A program made the translations under genes and the position numbers. Shown piece by piece: positions 50,102 to 57,890 of a stretch of DNA of 64,000 bases. The DNA lies in contig NW_020845073.1 in NCBI RefSeq assembly GCF_003704095.1, positions 1,240,001 to 1,304,000 of the forward strand, read 5' to 3'. The notes under the pieces are model-generated. The model was not told the DNA's origin, ran no database searches, and was given only the letters and a program-made list of their open reading frames with translations. How positions within the stretch are numbered: position 1 is the stretch's first letter; each line of letters begins with the position of its first letter. Source of the DNA: Pocillopora damicornis (Eukaryota).

Positions 50102-51944
50102 CAGTGGAACAGCAGAAACTTGATAGGTAGACATGCCCTGAGTGCTTGTAAAAAATATCAATAAAATATGGAAAAGTTAGAAGTCATACTCGTGCATTTC
50201 TCTGCAAAGTAAGGTTAAGTTTGTTGCTTCTCAAGTGGTTCTAGATTTTTCTACACCATTTGAAATGACTGATATCACCCAGAAGTAAGACTTACAGGTA
50301 AAGATTTCTCATAAATTTCCAAAGTAATTCAGGTATTCCTTCTTGAGTACACCTCATTTAGGCAACAATCTCCTAAATCTCTTTCACTAAATACTAAAAT
50401 TTTGCCCATGGAAGGAGTAATCCAAACCCTCTTGTAGGTAACCAGGACTACTTCCATTATTCTTTGTTGGTTCAGAGTCTGTATTGCTGAGTATTGATAA
50501 ACCTAAGTCATCACAAAGGCCAATCAGAGCACAGAGAAAATGTGCCAGACACAAGCTTAAATGAGAACTCAAAGTAAAGGCAAAAAATAAAATGACCTGC
50601 GAAAAATGTAGTAACTGCCTTCACACCATTACTTTTTTTGCTGAGAAACCCCAAGTTTCACCTAAAAAATGTCTAAGGGCACATTTTTTTAGCACATTCT
50701 TTGAGAAGTGCTCTTACAAAGATTCTCATCCACCAGTTTGTTTGCTGTTGTCATCAAGCCATTGGAAACCAAGGCTCCTTGCAATGCTATTATAATGTTT
50801 CTTCTAAGAAAATGCCTCCTAATTCATTGGCTATGACTCACCAACACAATAAGTTTAATTTTCCAAGGCCTGAACCACCTCCAATAATTGTTGTATGAGA
50901 TTTTCTCAAAGAGGGTGTTACAGATCAAATAATTGCTTGGCTGTGGAGGGGGTGCTCTAATGATTGTAAGCTATAAGAAGACCACCACAAGTTAAGTTTG
51001 TACCTCTTGTAAGCAAGCAGCTTCTATCATTCTATAGGCTTGAAATACAAAGGTAACAAAATCCAATTCACATGACTTTATTGTTGAATTCATAATCAAC
51101 ATGACATTATCTCACCATGAGCACCCCAACCTATCAATACTGAGCAAGCCTACATCAAAACAACACTTAGCTGCACCTAATGAGAGCATCCACAACACAT
51201 CAAACTTAACAACAATATTTATCAAATTGTCTTTTCAAAGACTTCTTTATGTTTAAGACAAAAATGTTTTCCCTCATAATTCTTGTGAAAAGAAAGACAC
51301 AACTAATGGTAGCTAGGTGGAGAAAGGGGGACTGTCTGAGTAAAACTGTCATTTGAATCTAGCATACAGCTACAGCAAGAAAAATCTCTAGAAACTGTTC
51401 AATAGTTGAATTATCATGCATAATAACTAATAATCATTCACACTGTAAAATACTAAACTGTTACCAGATTTATGGACAAATAAGCCCCTAGTTTCTTAAC
51501 ATATTTTGCCAAAAGAGGATTACTAAGCACAATAATTATCACTTTCTTACAATGGACTACTAAAAAAAATTCCATTTGATGGTCTGTAATGAGAAATGGA
51601 AAAAGTTAAATGTGTTACATTTATGAGCACCTTACAATCATTTTTGAGGCAACTACAAGCTTCCAAAACCAGTTTACACCAAGCCAAATAATTGGCAGGA
51701 CTCAAGTAAAAATTAATGGCTAAATAACTCTTTCCATCTTTTCTCAATCCATACAATGTCTATGTGGTTTGAGTACTGTCCCAAACAGACACAGATTTCC
51801 CCTTTCATATCTCTAAACTATGAAATTTGGGGAGCCCACATCAAATCTTGACATTTTAATTTTTAAATCAATTTAGTATTAACTAAGTACAATGTAAAAG
51901 TATTGCATGCAAACAGTAGCCTGTGGAAGGCCTGGGCACAACTG

Positions 51945-54900
51945 CTATTCAATAGTGTAAGCCATAAAGATGAAGTGTGGACTATCTGGACACAATTCGT
52001 GACCTGGCTTCACTGTCTCAAAACCCATGAACATGAAAGTGCGCATCAGACTCACTGCAAAAAGACCAACCAAAAGAAAAAATTATTTATTTACATTTAC
52101 ATACAGTACCCTGCTTGAGAAAGACTTTGAAAATGACTTGAGGATGCCCAAATAGTTAGTTACAAGCGAGAACTGAGTTGAATAAACATTTATATGCTGT
52201 ACAACTGAGCTGAACCCTTTCACTCTCAAGATCTCATCAGTGATTCTCCTTTCTATCTGCCACACAATTTTTATGATGTTAGTTTGGATAATTAATTATT
52301 GGATCAACTTAAGATATTCTACTTGATATTTTTCTTTATTCTTATCACTTGTCTGCTTGATATTGTATTGATATTGTAAGGAGAAATTCTGTCTTGGTCA
52401 CTCATAGAAGTTCAAGGGCTAAAAGAAAGCACAGGCAAATTAGGCCATAACAGTAACATCAACTCTTAGTACAGACAAACAAATAATAATTTTGCGTTTC
52501 TGTTATTATAATTAGAAAATGAGGGAATTTCAGGGTACAGTACGTTCTTTGTGCCCAAGAATTCAAATTACCTCTGTCTTCTCTTTCCTTGAGTAGACCA
52601 ACAAATATGTGAGTGCAGTCAAGATGTTCCTCTGCATACTCCAGCAGTGATACAAAACTAACCAAAACAAAGATTTCTAATAAGTGCCACGAGGTAATGT
52701 TATCTCAGTGCTAGTTTACAATAGGCTAGGCAATAGGCTTGGCAGATCCACCAATGAGTTGTAGTGGTATAGGCTAAGTTACTGCGCGTAAAAAGATTTT
52801 TAGGAGTGTCTTGAAGACCGATGGTTTTTTGACAGCTTAGCAACCCTCACAAAAGCATCTTAAACTCAATTTAGAATGCTTGAATACCTGTAGAGAGGTT
52901 TACAATAATGTTTTTATGATGTGACCAAATAAAGAAAATTTCCCTCAGGCTAATAACTTTAGTTCTTGTACTGACAAGTTCAAAATTTGGCTCTTCCAAT
53001 GCAGAGTTAAGAACCTTTTATTAACCATAACAGACAGAATTAGCCACAATAATGTGAGATTGTACCTTACAACTAAAGAGGAGAGACCTACCACAACTTA
53101 TCTAATTATCAGAGCAAATTCAAACTGCCACAGAAACAAGAAGTAATACATACAGTAGTCAGTATTACATACCACTCTTTGCCTCCAGGAGCAATCTCTC
53201 CATGTGGAACCTCTACATAAAGAAAGCTATTTTGCAACACAGCTCTCCACTTGACCACATCGTGTTCACCACTTTTAAGGCAAAAGCTATAGAGCAGGGA
53301 CTTTGATAGTTGGTCATTGTCACTCTCATTGGCTATTTTGGAATCCTGGTCAAAAACAAAAACATAATACAGTTGAACCTGTATTAAGTGGGACTGTACT
53401 AAGCGGTCACCCACTATTAAGGGTCACTTGTCAAAGTCCCAGATTTTTTTCTCCTTAATCACTGTACTTTTCACCTCTATGAAGCAGTCACCCCTATCAA
53501 ACAGTCATGGTCACTCGCCAGAGAGTCAGGAGATGACTGCAAGTTACTGGAGTTTCAAGAAACCCCAGCCATAATATGAACCTATACATACATGGACAAA
53601 ACTAACTAACTCCTTATCTACACAGGTCCAAAACAAGAAACAATCTCTTCACCTTTCCAAAGCATTTTACTTGTTCACTGATAGCAAACTTGAGCTCAAA
53701 TTCTTGTCATAATACAACTATTGGAGTTTTTCAGTTCCACGCATTGTAGTTTAAAATTCAGGTATATTTCCATAATCTTTACAAAGAGGACAATACAAAT
53801 CAAACTAATCTTAAGCCATTTATAATGAAAATAGGACTGAGTGGAGTCCAATTCCATCTGCAGTACTGTTATACAGTCAAGTATAATGGATCTGTAGTCA
53901 TATGAATGATTTAAGAAATTGAACCATGCTGGGACAAATATCACTTACATTAAAAAGTTTGAGGAAGGATATACCGTCCTCATCATCATCTCCTCCTCCA
54001 CCACCATCTCCTGAACTTCCTGCCTCGTCATAGCGGACATCAGGTATACCAGTCCATCCACTGTCGCAGCTTATAGTTACAATACACTGCTGACTCCCTG
54101 GTCAAATTAATCAAGCAATAGTATTACAAACAAGCAAATTTTGGTGAACAAGATTCAACACTTTTTCAAAACTATTATTTTTGAATTCCAGACTTAAGTT
54201 AAGGAGTCAAATCTGATGACTAACACCTAAAGGTAGTTTTCAGGGGTTCACCCTCAAGGTGAATATTCTTCAAATAAGTTAATAAAAGAAAATTTGAACT
54301 TGCACATAAAAATTCTGAACGGTAATTTATGTATTTAATAATGCAATGACAAAAAATGATACAGGCTTCTTCCAATGTTTGATTTGAGACTTGATAACAC
54401 TTAATAAAGGTCTTGAATATGTTTTCTTTTGATTTAGGATTCCACGCAAACCCTGAATAAAACAAAGGCTGGCTGAAAACAAAGGGCTGTCTGAAAAATA
54501 TAATATTCAACACTGATGATTTAATCTTGTGAAACAAAGGTTCCCGTCTAGTCAAAGGTGCGATGGTACTAATAGTAATGTTTCCAACACAATTTTCGTG
54601 TTTGCAGGGCGAGAATGTCTATGATTCCTCACTTTACACGACAAAGATCTCAAAAATCACACACCAACTGGTTTGAAAATAAAGGCAATTTGCTAGCGGC
54701 ACCAACAAATTCGCTTACATCAAATGCAGCTGCAATGAATACAAATTATTAGCGACAAAATTTTATTATGTAATGAGCTTTGATCACTTGTTATCACTGC
54801 AGCTACGATAAACACACGCATTCGAATACTGAAGTCACTTGACATTAAAATACTTTAAACATTCCTGGAAAAAAAATCGAGCACAAGTGGGCAAGTATCA

Positions 54901-54967
54901 GTTTTATCATAACAAAGTGAATATATGGCTGAGACATACGTAACAACAAAATCTTCCCCACTTACAG
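51945..54967 (-). CDS. OAZ: Ornithine decarboxylase antizyme, expressed by a probable +1 frameshift. Exons: leader ending 54966, 54097-53949, 53345-53173, 52657-52572, 52054-51945
   Basis: ORF2 reads DVRYDEAG..WRAVLQNSFLYVEVP..GGKECFVSLLEYAEEHLDCTHIFVGLLKEREDRVSLMRTFMFMGFETVKPGHELCP..FIFMAYTIE*. It has no usable in-frame AUG upstream of the conserved domain. ORF1 ends TGG TAT ACC TGA T (54051-54039), overlapping the ORF2 GAT GTC in the +1 frame. Confidence 0.92.
53367..53512. mobile_element. Tc1/mariner-type MITE remnant (TA-CAGT end) in an antizyme intron
   Basis: atacagttgaacctgtattaag..aagcggtcaccc..ttaag repeated subunits. Confidence 0.4.
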
Positions 54968-55789
54968 GGCTGTTTGGCGAATTTCCCCGGATGTTTTTGG
55001 TTAGGATGTTGGTTTTCTTTCTTCTTGTGCGGCGAAATTGTTGACAAGTCGCTGCCGAAGCAGACTACTGACGACAACAGCAATAATTAAACGTTTGAGG
55101 GAGAAACTGAATAGGCGATTGCTCCACTAAAGACTCCTGAGCCCCAACAGATCATGGAAGTCGAAAATGTAGACCAGAATGCTTTTGGACATTTGTCAGC
55201 CTTGTTCCCAGGCTTTTTCTGGTGCATTTAAGAATGGGTTTTGAGTGTCGTCTCATATTACAGAAAAGTTATTGCAAAATTAAAATTTTCAAGCCCATTG
55301 TTATGTAGGATTTCAAGCAGTGCAACATCTCACAGAACCAAAAAGGCATTAAGTTTAAAGTGGCTTGAGAGGCTTATACATATCCTCGCTGATCGTCGCT
55401 GTAAATTCAGCCTTCGGAGAAGCATAATAGTACTAGTAATTAGGCTAATAATAGAACTATTAACAATGGTCATAGTACTAGTCTTCTTCTGATTTATTAA
55501 CGAGGAGGAACAATGACCTACGATCAAAACGTAGTTGTACGTTTGGGTCTTAAGCTAATTTTCTTGCAAGACTGAAATCCACGATTGGAAAGGTATAATT
55601 ACTCAGAGGATCGTCATTGTCAACATCATCATCATCATCTCAATTAATTCGGTAAAAGCCGGTTAGGCAACATACCAACCACGTACAAAATGCAAAAGTA
55701 AAAGTTATACACTACAATAAGTACAATTCAGAATAAAAAATGAACTATACAAATTGAAACGCTCCTATTAGCCTAATGAACTGAAGTAA

Positions 55790-55893
55790 TTATTGAATTC
55801 GACAAGAGATGTAATATCAGATATATCAAGGAGAAGCTGATTCCAGTCTCGGGCAGTTTTTGGGAAAAACGAAAGTTTGAACACGTTCTTCCT
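55790..55893 (-). mobile_element. 3' remnant of a LINE (L2/CR1-like) reverse transcriptase ORF
   Basis: Minus strand translates RKNVFKLSFFPKTARDWNQLLLDISDITSLVEF, matching the SFFPRT..WN.L..SL..F C-terminal motif. Confidence 0.65.
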
Positions 55894-57810
55894 ACAAAAA
55901 AAATTATTATTATTATTATTATTAATTATTATTCAACAATACTCAGATTAACAGCTTTCAGACTAACCTTTTTAGCTGTGCTGGGTCGTCACGTTTTAAG
56001 CTGAATTTTTCCTATGTCGGCCACAGTGAACAGGCTGCTTTAAATTGGGTCCGAAAAAAAACTTAATTAAAGGTGCTTAGTCAGTTACTCGACTGACTAT
56101 GAATGTTTAATTTCAGAGTTTTCTAAATAACTCAAAGAATTTGAACAAAAACTGATTCCTAAAAACATTCGTTAGGTAAGTCAAAGGTTAACTTTTGGCT
56201 GTTGGTTTAAAATAATAAAGAATTTCTGATTTGCTAATGTTCTTGCCAGCAACGTTTTACTTAGCCATATTCAGCGATATGCCGCTCTTCCTGGTCTGGA
56301 TTGGAAATACGAGGAAATTCAATACACCCTATACACAAATGACCTCATTTATAATCTTTTTATGTTATTTTTCCAAAGATTTATATAAACTTAGGACCTG
56401 TCAATGATTAGAAAGAGAAAAGCTGGGAATTTATCGCATAGTACACGCACACACATCTAAGGAGTCCGTTAATATAAAATGAACCTTTACTCGTTCAGTA
56501 AAAATGTTACAGAAAAGACAACAACACATTTTTATCGTTTATGCATTTAATGACAACAACTAAATGCAGTCAATATTTTTTTTGGCTTTCTCCCATTTTT
56601 TCCTTTTTCTATGTCATTATTATTGCAGTTAGACGTTCGTTGTACAAGCTCGTTATTTTGAAGGAGCAGCCACTCAGAAAGATACACACAGCTTTATGGA
56701 CTCGAATAAACAGTAATTACTTTGAAATTATGATAATATCGCCGATCTACAAAAGTCAACTATTAAAAAAGAATGTCTAATCACCTTAAAATTATGGGCC
56801 TACTTATTGATTAAACCCCCGTAAATACACGTAAGCAGTGCTCGGAGAGGAATCGCTCAGTTGTTTAGCTCAATTACCCACATGTTCATTGTTAAAGGTC
56901 CGGCTTTTGTTGTGCGAAGAAGTGCGGTGTGTAAAAAAGGGTTTCCTTTGCCTCTGGAATCAATCATATTAGAAAGTACAACGTAAAGTCGCCGGCGACT
57001 CTAAAAAAAGGGAAAATCAGGGGCGTAGCGACCATATGTGTACAAGCGTAAATTTGGATCCCTGCAGAATTGCTTTTATCTATGAAATCGTGCTCATTTG
57101 CATGAATTCCTCTCAGTTTGATGCTACGACTTGGAATGGTAGAATGAACTGTTTGTCCAACCTAAAAGCTCTGTCGTTATGGTAAACAAAATGGGTCTCT
57201 AGAACAACATTCCCGATTTAAAAAGGGTTCAAAGTTAAATGATTCCAAACGATGTGTTTAAACTTCATTTAAAATTAAAGAAATGCTTGATCTTCTGGCC
57301 CTCTACATGATTGGGTGAGCCTTTCAAATGATCACCATTACCTCGTCATAGATTCTCTAAAGTAAAAGACAGACAAGAACGTCGAGTAGAGGATTAAAAA
57401 AAATGTCTTAATACTTGATTAAACAAATATTATCGCAGTATATAATGTTCAGGTTGCCATTTATTTTTTGATCTGAGGCGTCACAAGTGAGAACTGTGTT
57501 GACCCTTCAATGAGTTGTTTGCTGGGCTTCCGCCGGGCTTTTAGGATCTTGCATTCATATACCGAGCTAAAATGGGCCTTTCCTCAAACACAGAGAGGTA
57601 AATGCAAACAGTTGTGCGCTTATTGCGACAAGCCGCTGACAGAAAAAACCCACAAGGAACTTTTAAAACGTTTATACGTCAAAGTAATATGTAACAAAGT
57701 GTTCATTGATAAAACACTTCAAGAAATTGTTCACTTAAACCCGCATAGGAAAATGGAACAGCTGTAAAAACAAGGAAGAGCGCTAAGAGCAATGTATGAT
57801 CTACTCTTAC

Positions 57811-57818
57811 TATAAAAG
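57811..57818 (+). promoter_or_regulatory. TATA box of the serine protease gene
   Basis: TATAAAAG 80 bp upstream of the ATG at 57891. Confidence 0.55.
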
Positions 57819-57890
57819 TAGGCAGATGAAGAAGGACTTTTTACATGCAGACCTTCAGACAACAAAGAACTCCCGAGGTTTTTGTTCAAA

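Follow-up and report, generated by a model that had tools for sequence, protein, structure and literature searches.

The 64,000-nucleotide stretch of DNA analysed here (the window; Pocillopora damicornis contig NW_020845073.1, positions 1,240,001 to 1,304,000, assembly GCF_003704095.1) carries on its minus strand the single-copy, five-exon ornithine decarboxylase antizyme gene of this pocilloporid coral. Antizyme is, to our knowledge, the textbook cellular gene whose product is made only through programmed frameshifting. Comparison of this gene with its homologues in corals and sea anemones leads us to think, on balance, that both frames of the messenger RNA (mRNA) are used. A leader open reading frame (ORF) begun at a near-cognate codon would run directly into ORF2, and a short ORF1 would give access to ORF2 through a +1 frameshift. 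We lean to a similar degree towards the view that the leader is protein coding in the ORF2 frame across Hexacorallia, mostly without an AUG. If this is true, a whole animal clade can also reach antizyme by way of a conserved, AUG-less N-terminal extension of ORF2, and antizyme control would be tied to polyamine-sensitive near-cognate initiation, a phenomenon that we know so far only from the leaders of AZIN1/ODC mRNAs.

The comparison covers eight species for exon 2 and 12 distinct sequences for exon 1, collected by exon-level searches, contig look-ups and one DNA-pattern scan. The exon 1 set includes Nematostella (L031) and a divergent lineage (L016/L032), with homologues in L011, L014, L016, L031 and L032-L044, and the natural transcript contig L017 served as the long protein query. 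Traced back from the shift site, the ORF2 (+1) frame meets no stop for about 59 codons: it crosses the 5′ portion of exon 2 and the splice junction (where U/GG encodes Trp) and enters exon 1; one given frame is expected to be open over the whole stretch in 3% of composition shuffles. To ask which frame is under selection, the ratio of non-synonymous to synonymous change (pN/pS) was taken from Nei-Gojobori counts. For the ORF2 frame it comes to 0.08-0.35 in exon 1 and to 0.00-0.26 in the part of exon 2 that precedes the shift site, whereas in the frame of ORF1 and in the third frame it runs from 0.33 to above 3, or synonymous change is absent altogether.

Other features of the variation point to the same frame. 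Changes at ORF2-frame codon positions 1/2/3 number 18/10/28 in exon 1 of all species (chi-square p 0.013), 7/1/13 in exon 1 of scleractinians (chi-square p 0.006) and 3/7/14 in exon 2 (p 0.02). All of the first six substitutions found in exon 2 upstream of the shift site are non-synonymous in ORF1, and five of the six are synonymous in the +1 frame. Leucine codons of the leader swap among UUG, CUG and CUA between species, and exon 1 has two indels in its coding-like part, each of 3 nucleotides. The leader thus has the makings of a conserved non-AUG extension, being in frame with ORF2, free of stops and AUG codons, and under purifying selection.

At the protein level, the antizymes of at least 15 hexacorals, among them those of Stylophora, Oculina, Montipora, Porites, Actinia, Exaiptasia and Nematostella and of several transcript contigs, align over the full length of the query, with the 19 residues before the shift site included, and then over 30-40 residues more into exon 1. 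Their leader consensus is ..TISPHKKKENQ.PNQ..PGK..KQPWSQQCIVTISCDSGWTGIP/DVRY.., also written ..PGK..KQPW SQQCIVTISCDSGWTGIP DVRY... The predicted +1-frame tryptic peptide across the junction and the shift site is QPWSQQCIVTISCDSGWTGIPDVR, and its frameshift counterpart is ..MDWYTDVR. Coding of the leader in the ORF2 frame would explain why antizyme models of corals and anemones in public databases are ‘partial’ or have invented start exons. The NCBI models of Stylophora, Actinia and Exaiptasia are indeed ‘partial’ (start codon not found), and the ‘MC’ start of the Nematostella model is a gene-prediction artefact, with a Met taken from an invented 7-nucleotide exon. Nematostella and Exaiptasia are tractable systems in which the leader ORF could be tested.

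ORF2 contains no AUG before its C-terminal ...SLMRTFMFMGFE (transcript L017), and a functional product consequently requires either a frameshift or a non-AUG start. The place where a leader ORF could begin is narrowed by in-frame stops that lie just 5′ of a small hairpin (55063-55052), or adjoin it, in L016, L033, L039 and L040, which would confine the start to the region downstream of them. In that region the AUU at 55038-55036 is the only near-cognate codon kept in all 12 sequences. Non-AUG initiation is thus likely, and its best support is in the ORF2 frame, with this AUU as the candidate codon; the UUG at 55047-55045, three codons upstream, is a second candidate in some species only. Another UUG, just 5′ of the hairpin, was considered as a universal start and was ruled out, because in L040 a TAA follows it immediately and in L016 a stop adjoins the hairpin.

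The 4-base-pair stem of the hairpin is invariant in the 12 exon 1 sequences from corals to Nematostella, which makes covariation impossible there, and the loop is UUCG, CUCG or UUAG. This element could be a scanning pause that aids near-cognate starts, or could simply reflect codons for Cys-Phe/Leu-Gly-Ser. RNA structure predictions for the leader and exon 2 gave no excess over shuffled sequences (Z-scores of +0.79 and -0.37).

The boundaries of the leader were drawn from RNA contigs of four runs, one from each of four studies, placed on 51900-57890. Exon 1 contigs begin at 55117, 55125, 55127 and 55127 in the four runs, and RNA contig depth is zero across 55300-57700 in all of them. Transcription accordingly starts near 55128, a contig-based and approximate position at least 17 nucleotides upstream of TCAGTT (55110-55105), the sequence at which an original prediction, made on this DNA from its letters, had placed the transcript start. 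The same prediction held that the leader lacks an ATG, and none is found from the contig 5′ ends (about 55127) down to the donor, even with exon 1 extended in this way. The absence of ATG from 163 nucleotides is only mildly unusual, being shared by 9% of shuffles and by 6% of the 163-nucleotide windows of the region, and the ATG-free span above the exon 1 donor measures at least 190 nucleotides in every hexacoral exon 1 measured.

The nearest upstream ATG, at 55155, lies beyond the RNA contig ends. It was rejected as a start: although its position is conserved and it shares the frame of ORF2, stops close it in every species and it stands outside the transcribed contigs. All scleractinian sequences keep this ATG (55153-55155, in ..TTCCATG..) at 190-202 nucleotides above the exon 1 donor, with homologous sites in L011, L033, L036, L039 and L040, and it may be an element of the promoter, not a start codon.

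Sequence conservation also indicates that the frameshift cassette is still under selection. ORF2 carries PF02100, and the stop of ORF1 is overlapped in the +1 direction by ORF2 at the site homologous to that of other antizymes. The 26-nucleotide block just 5′ of the shift site is invariant in six corals and flanking synonymous sites vary (Fisher p 0.009); the CCU GAY of the +1 frame, which yields the UGA of ORF1, is invariant in all eight species. The P-site codon before UGA is ACC in six corals, this one included, and UCC in L016 and Nematostella. A 2007 survey lists seven P-site codons for antizymes, ACC not among them, and only UCC for cnidarians (PMC1874602). In many animals the shift is aided by a 3′ RNA stimulator, a pseudoknot. 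Downstream of the coral shift site, covariation was absent among the six corals and the predicted fold was not better than shuffles. An Rfam search matched no family near the site, and a literature search found no paper on coral antizyme recoding.

The only in-frame ATG of ORF1, at 54057-54055, has T at -3 and G at +4. As had been predicted, it leaves 5 codons before the stop (AUG GAC UGG UAU ACC), outside the range of 17-86 codons for antizyme ORF1; the shortest recorded antizyme ORF1, that of Hydra, has 17 codons (PMC1874602). This AUG, at codon 15 when ORF1 is counted from the splice junction, is kept in the six ACC-type corals. L016 and Nematostella have UUG or CUG at codon 15 and carry an ORF1 AUG at codon 5.

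The splice that joins exon 1 to exon 2 creates a CUG in the ORF1 frame, as the original prediction had recognized. Its joint (54965/6 to 54096/7) is present in the RNA contigs of all four runs, at depths of 58-1378. On the minus strand, exon 1 ends with ...ACA GCC CT at 54966, and intron 1 runs from its donor GTAAGT (54965-54960) to its acceptor AG (54099-54098); exon 2 opens with G GAG TCA at 54097. From the CUG the spliced ORF1 reads LESAVYCNYKLRQWMDWYT in 19 codons, ending with ACC (54045-54043) and UGA (54042-54040). Retention of intron 1 is seen at contig depths of 5-15 in the four runs and in transcript contig L017, and in unspliced RNA the CUG is followed at once by UAA. Both the length of this ORF1 and the fate of the CUG without splicing agree with the prediction.

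Conservation of the junction in coral and anemone orthologues, which the prediction had named as a check, is also evident. The junction codon is CUG in 11 distinct exon 1 sequences, Nematostella included, and AUG in the L016/L032 lineage, which has the canonical UCC-UGA too. Exon 1 ends with ..CAG CCC U in all scleractinian-type sequences, with ..CAA CCC U in Nematostella and with ..CAU UCA U in L016/L032, and exon 2 opens with G GAG YCA in all species compared. In this comparison the junction codon behaves like a start site, which supports, but does not prove, its use as one. The ideal Kozak context claimed for the CUG is present. However, the RCC NUG G context is uninformative on its own because a conserved Q-P-W (CAR CCN UGG) in the +1 frame fixes the purine at -3, the G at +4 and the NUG itself, and it cannot be counted as independent evidence.

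Is ORF1 then entered mainly at the splice-made CUG, so that 19 codons are read before a +1 shift at ACC-UGA, with near-cognate initiation of ORF1 as a second control? We regard this as possible but less than probable, and give about one chance in three to the junction CUG being under selection and in use as a start. Beyond its context and the AUG that replaces it in L016/L032, the CUG is kept in 11 exon 1 sequences although the other frame has there the synonymous site of a Pro codon (CCC), a kind of site that varies at other Pro codons in the leader. One unchanged synonymous site over such a tree is, however, not significant alone. Three +1-frame synonymous sites never carry the T that would stop ORF1 at codons 10-13, but these codons fall in the wholly invariant block, which may be an RNA-level stimulator. 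Mammalian antizyme 3 provides a precedent for a CUG start (PMC1874602, PMC5009743), and a conserved near-cognate CUG in good context and without an upstream in-frame AUG is likewise found here; the extension, though, is not conserved as protein in the ORF1 frame. Between the junction and the AUG at 54057 the ORF1 peptide shows almost no synonymous change (pN/pS 0.33 to undefined), and purifying selection on it was not detected. Furthermore, every species has a downstream AUG in ORF1, at codon 5 or 15, and the clear coding signal of the AUG-less leader is in the ORF2 frame, not in that of ORF1. The proposal that near-cognate initiation and frameshifting are stacked on one mRNA may well be correct, though probably in a form other than the one first put forward.

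If the leader were instead untranslated, ORF1 would be the 5 codons from the first AUG, and the conservation of the upstream +1 frame would reflect constraint at the RNA level, such as a 5′ frameshift stimulator or leader elements. Conservation of that first AUG in all six ACC-type corals fits this account, as do the 26-nucleotide invariant block that adjoins the shift site and the location of known antizyme 5′ stimulators within about 50 nucleotides of the site (PMC1874602). We nevertheless consider it unlikely, since RNA constraint predicts neither third-position periodicity, nor swaps among the Leu codons, nor 3-nucleotide indels, and it fails to predict a pN/pS of 0.1-0.35 in one frame only, over two exons and about 15 species from corals to Nematostella. 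A 5-codon ORF1 would also be far below the 17-codon minimum of Hydra (PMC1874602). Far less probable still is an incomplete gene model in which another first exon or a trans-spliced leader brings an in-phase AUG. One contig of run X1 has 30 unmatched bases with ATGs upstream of 55117, but there is no AG at 55118 to serve as acceptor, and these loose bases are absent from the other three runs, which track the genome to 55125-55127. Transcript contigs L018-L022 bear 37 foreign bases 28 nucleotides upstream of exon 2, but these belong to a repeat that is dispersed through this genome in at least 129 copies. The sole joint into exon 2 among the RNA contigs of the four runs comes from 54966, and the RNA-supported NCBI models of Stylophora, Actinia and Exaiptasia are likewise startless. 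An alternative first exon was rejected on these grounds, and the different first exon that would have undone the original prediction was not found. In L018-L022, which come from closely related Pocillopora samples, the repeat end occupies bases 1-37 (about 54125) and removes the in-frame TAA that closes ORF1 in unspliced sequence; the explanation is an insertion polymorphism of the intron or else a chimeric assembly.

Returning to the use of both frames, ribosomes that scan exon 1 would meet no AUG, and a minority may initiate in the +1 frame on a near-cognate codon, with AUU 55038-55036 as the best candidate and, in some species, the UUG upstream as a possible one. Ribosomes started in the leader would read straight through the shift site, yielding an N-terminally extended antizyme of about 196 amino acids without any frameshift. 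The remaining ribosomes would reach the tiny overlapping ORF1. Their entry point would most probably be AUG 54057, for an ORF1 of 5 codons, with the junction CUG perhaps a further one, for 19 codons; at the end of ORF1 they would terminate at UGA or else make the +1 shift on ACC-UGA-U, producing a short antizyme of 158 or 172 amino acids. Polyamines favour antizyme frameshifting. They also stimulate AUU initiation on AZIN1 mRNA (PMC2811004), and as a speculation high polyamine levels could therefore raise antizyme by both routes. More tentatively, and with some doubt, we suggest that the hexacoral antizyme mRNA comprises two polyamine sensors, one being the ancient +1 frameshift from a mini-ORF1 and the other a polyamine-favoured AUU initiation of a leader ORF fused to ORF2, with the junction CUG/AUG and the ORF1 AUG setting the split between them.

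Several points count against a translated leader and a two-route mRNA. The antizyme frameshift sensor is conserved from fungi to mammals, and a frameshift-independent route would undercut the logic of a sensor that is clearly still conserved here. The case for leader translation is wholly comparative, and the start codon is only deduced: the candidate AUU is preceded by A at -3 yet followed by U at +4, and no other near-cognate codon is conserved. The Oculina and Montipora models carry annotated methionine starts. AlphaFold gave no confident structure for the extension, with a predicted local distance difference test (pLDDT) score below 50 for residues 1-81. Finally, the RNA contigs are assemblies, and the 5′ end that they give for the mRNA is only approximate.

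How this arrangement relates to known systems can be judged from four of them. Canonical antizyme mRNAs (Matsufuji 1995; Ivanov & Atkins 2007, PMC1874602) share with that of the coral a short ORF1 ending in UGA, a +1 ORF2 with the ODC_AZ domain, an NCC-UGA-U/C shift site at the homologous place and strong conservation 5′ of the site. The coral differs in its P-site codon ACC, in having a 5-codon AUG-started ORF1 where the recorded minimum is 17, in the lack of conservation of its ORF1 peptide and in the lack of an Rfam match near the site. Moreover, the coral ORF2 is not closed upstream but runs on as conserved coding sequence into the AUG-less exon 1. OAZ3 resembles the coral in its non-AUG initiation (putative here) on an antizyme mRNA, at a conserved CUG without an upstream in-frame AUG. 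In OAZ3, however, the extension lies in the ORF1 frame and has a conserved peptide, whereas in the coral it is the ORF2 frame that encodes the conserved peptide, and the 14 ORF1 codons from CUG to AUG lack conservation as protein.

In AZIN1/ODC mRNAs an upstream conserved coding region (uCC) is started at AUU, UUG or ACG, and its initiation is polyamine-stimulated (PMC2811004). These, too, are polyamine-pathway mRNAs with an AUG-less conserved coding region in the leader, which in the coral is in the ORF2 frame and has an invariant AUU candidate with a purine at -3. The uCC, in contrast, is a separate upstream ORF that has two adjacent prolines near its end and represses the main ORF. The coral leader has neither Pro-Pro (only a single Pro-Trp at the junction) nor a stop and is fused in frame to the main ORF, so that its translation would make antizyme rather than repress it. 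Genes with non-AUG N-terminal extensions (Ivanov et al. 2011, PMC3105428) likewise have an in-frame 5′ extension that lacks AUG and stop codons and is under purifying selection. Those genes also have an AUG for the main form, whereas the coral ORF2 has none of its own, and its other entry is a frameshift from an overlapping mini-ORF.

A search of the 234.35-Mb, 4393-contig assembly found one antizyme copy, and the closest named protein is Stylophora antizyme, at 92% identity. The ODC_AZ domain (PF02100) is matched by exons 4 and 5 with 25.6 and 24.9 bits against a cut-off of 24.2 (E 1.2e-5 and 2e-5) and is also carried by full-length relatives of the protein; a Pfam search with exons 2 and 3 matched no family. 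The 3′ untranslated region reaches at least to 50763 in transcript contig L017.

Features of the antizyme gene in the window, in order of transcription.
Feature	Position	Strand	Basis
TAA closing the ORF2 (+1) frame in exon 1; frame open from 55086 through the junction into ORF2	55087..55089	-	sequence
Exon 1, AUG-less leader of about 163 nucleotides	54966..55128	-	RNA contigs of four runs; 5′ end approximate
Small hairpin CUGC-UUCG-GCAG; +1 frame reads Cys-Phe/Leu-Gly-Ser	55052..55063	-	comparison
Invariant AUU (aca AUU u), ORF2 frame, best candidate for a universal start	55036..55038	-	kept in 12/12 exon 1 sequences
TAA that ends the ORF1 frame, 12 codons above the junction codon	55001..55003	-	sequence
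CU of the junction codon (G = 54097); CUG in the ORF1 frame; in the ORF2 frame last base of Pro (CCC) and first of Trp (U/GG)	54966..54967	-	RNA joints; comparison
Intron 1, GT..AG, 868 nucleotides	54098..54965	-	joint in 4/4 runs
Exon 2: ORF1 (19 codons from junction), shift site, start of ORF2	53949..54097	-	RNA joints and comparison
Earliest AUG in the mRNA, in frame with ORF1 (ugg AUG g); UGA follows after 5 codons	54055..54057	-	sequence; comparison
Shift site ACC-UGA-U; ORF2 goes on GAU GUC	54039..54045	-	sequence; 8-species comparison
Exon 3	53173..53345	-	RNA joints; translation
Exon 4, ODC_AZ domain	52572..52657	-	RNA joints; PF02100 E 1.2e-5
Exon 5, coding part, ODC_AZ domain; ends ...AYTIE and stop	51945..52054	-	RNA joints; PF02100 E 2e-5

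Two further observations concern repeats in antizyme genes. In each of the four runs the RNA contigs over the intron 4 segment 52300-52499 reach a summed depth of 44,000-170,000, and numerous loose ends fall at 52319-52406. This segment has no Rfam match and looks like a short, highly expressed repeat resembling a short interspersed nuclear element (SINE). In another coral, antizyme exons 2-3 are followed, about 2 kb further on, by a retroelement that carries genes for integrase and reverse transcriptase (L009:7658-10351, L010:6257-8943) and that probably sits inside the antizyme gene of that coral.

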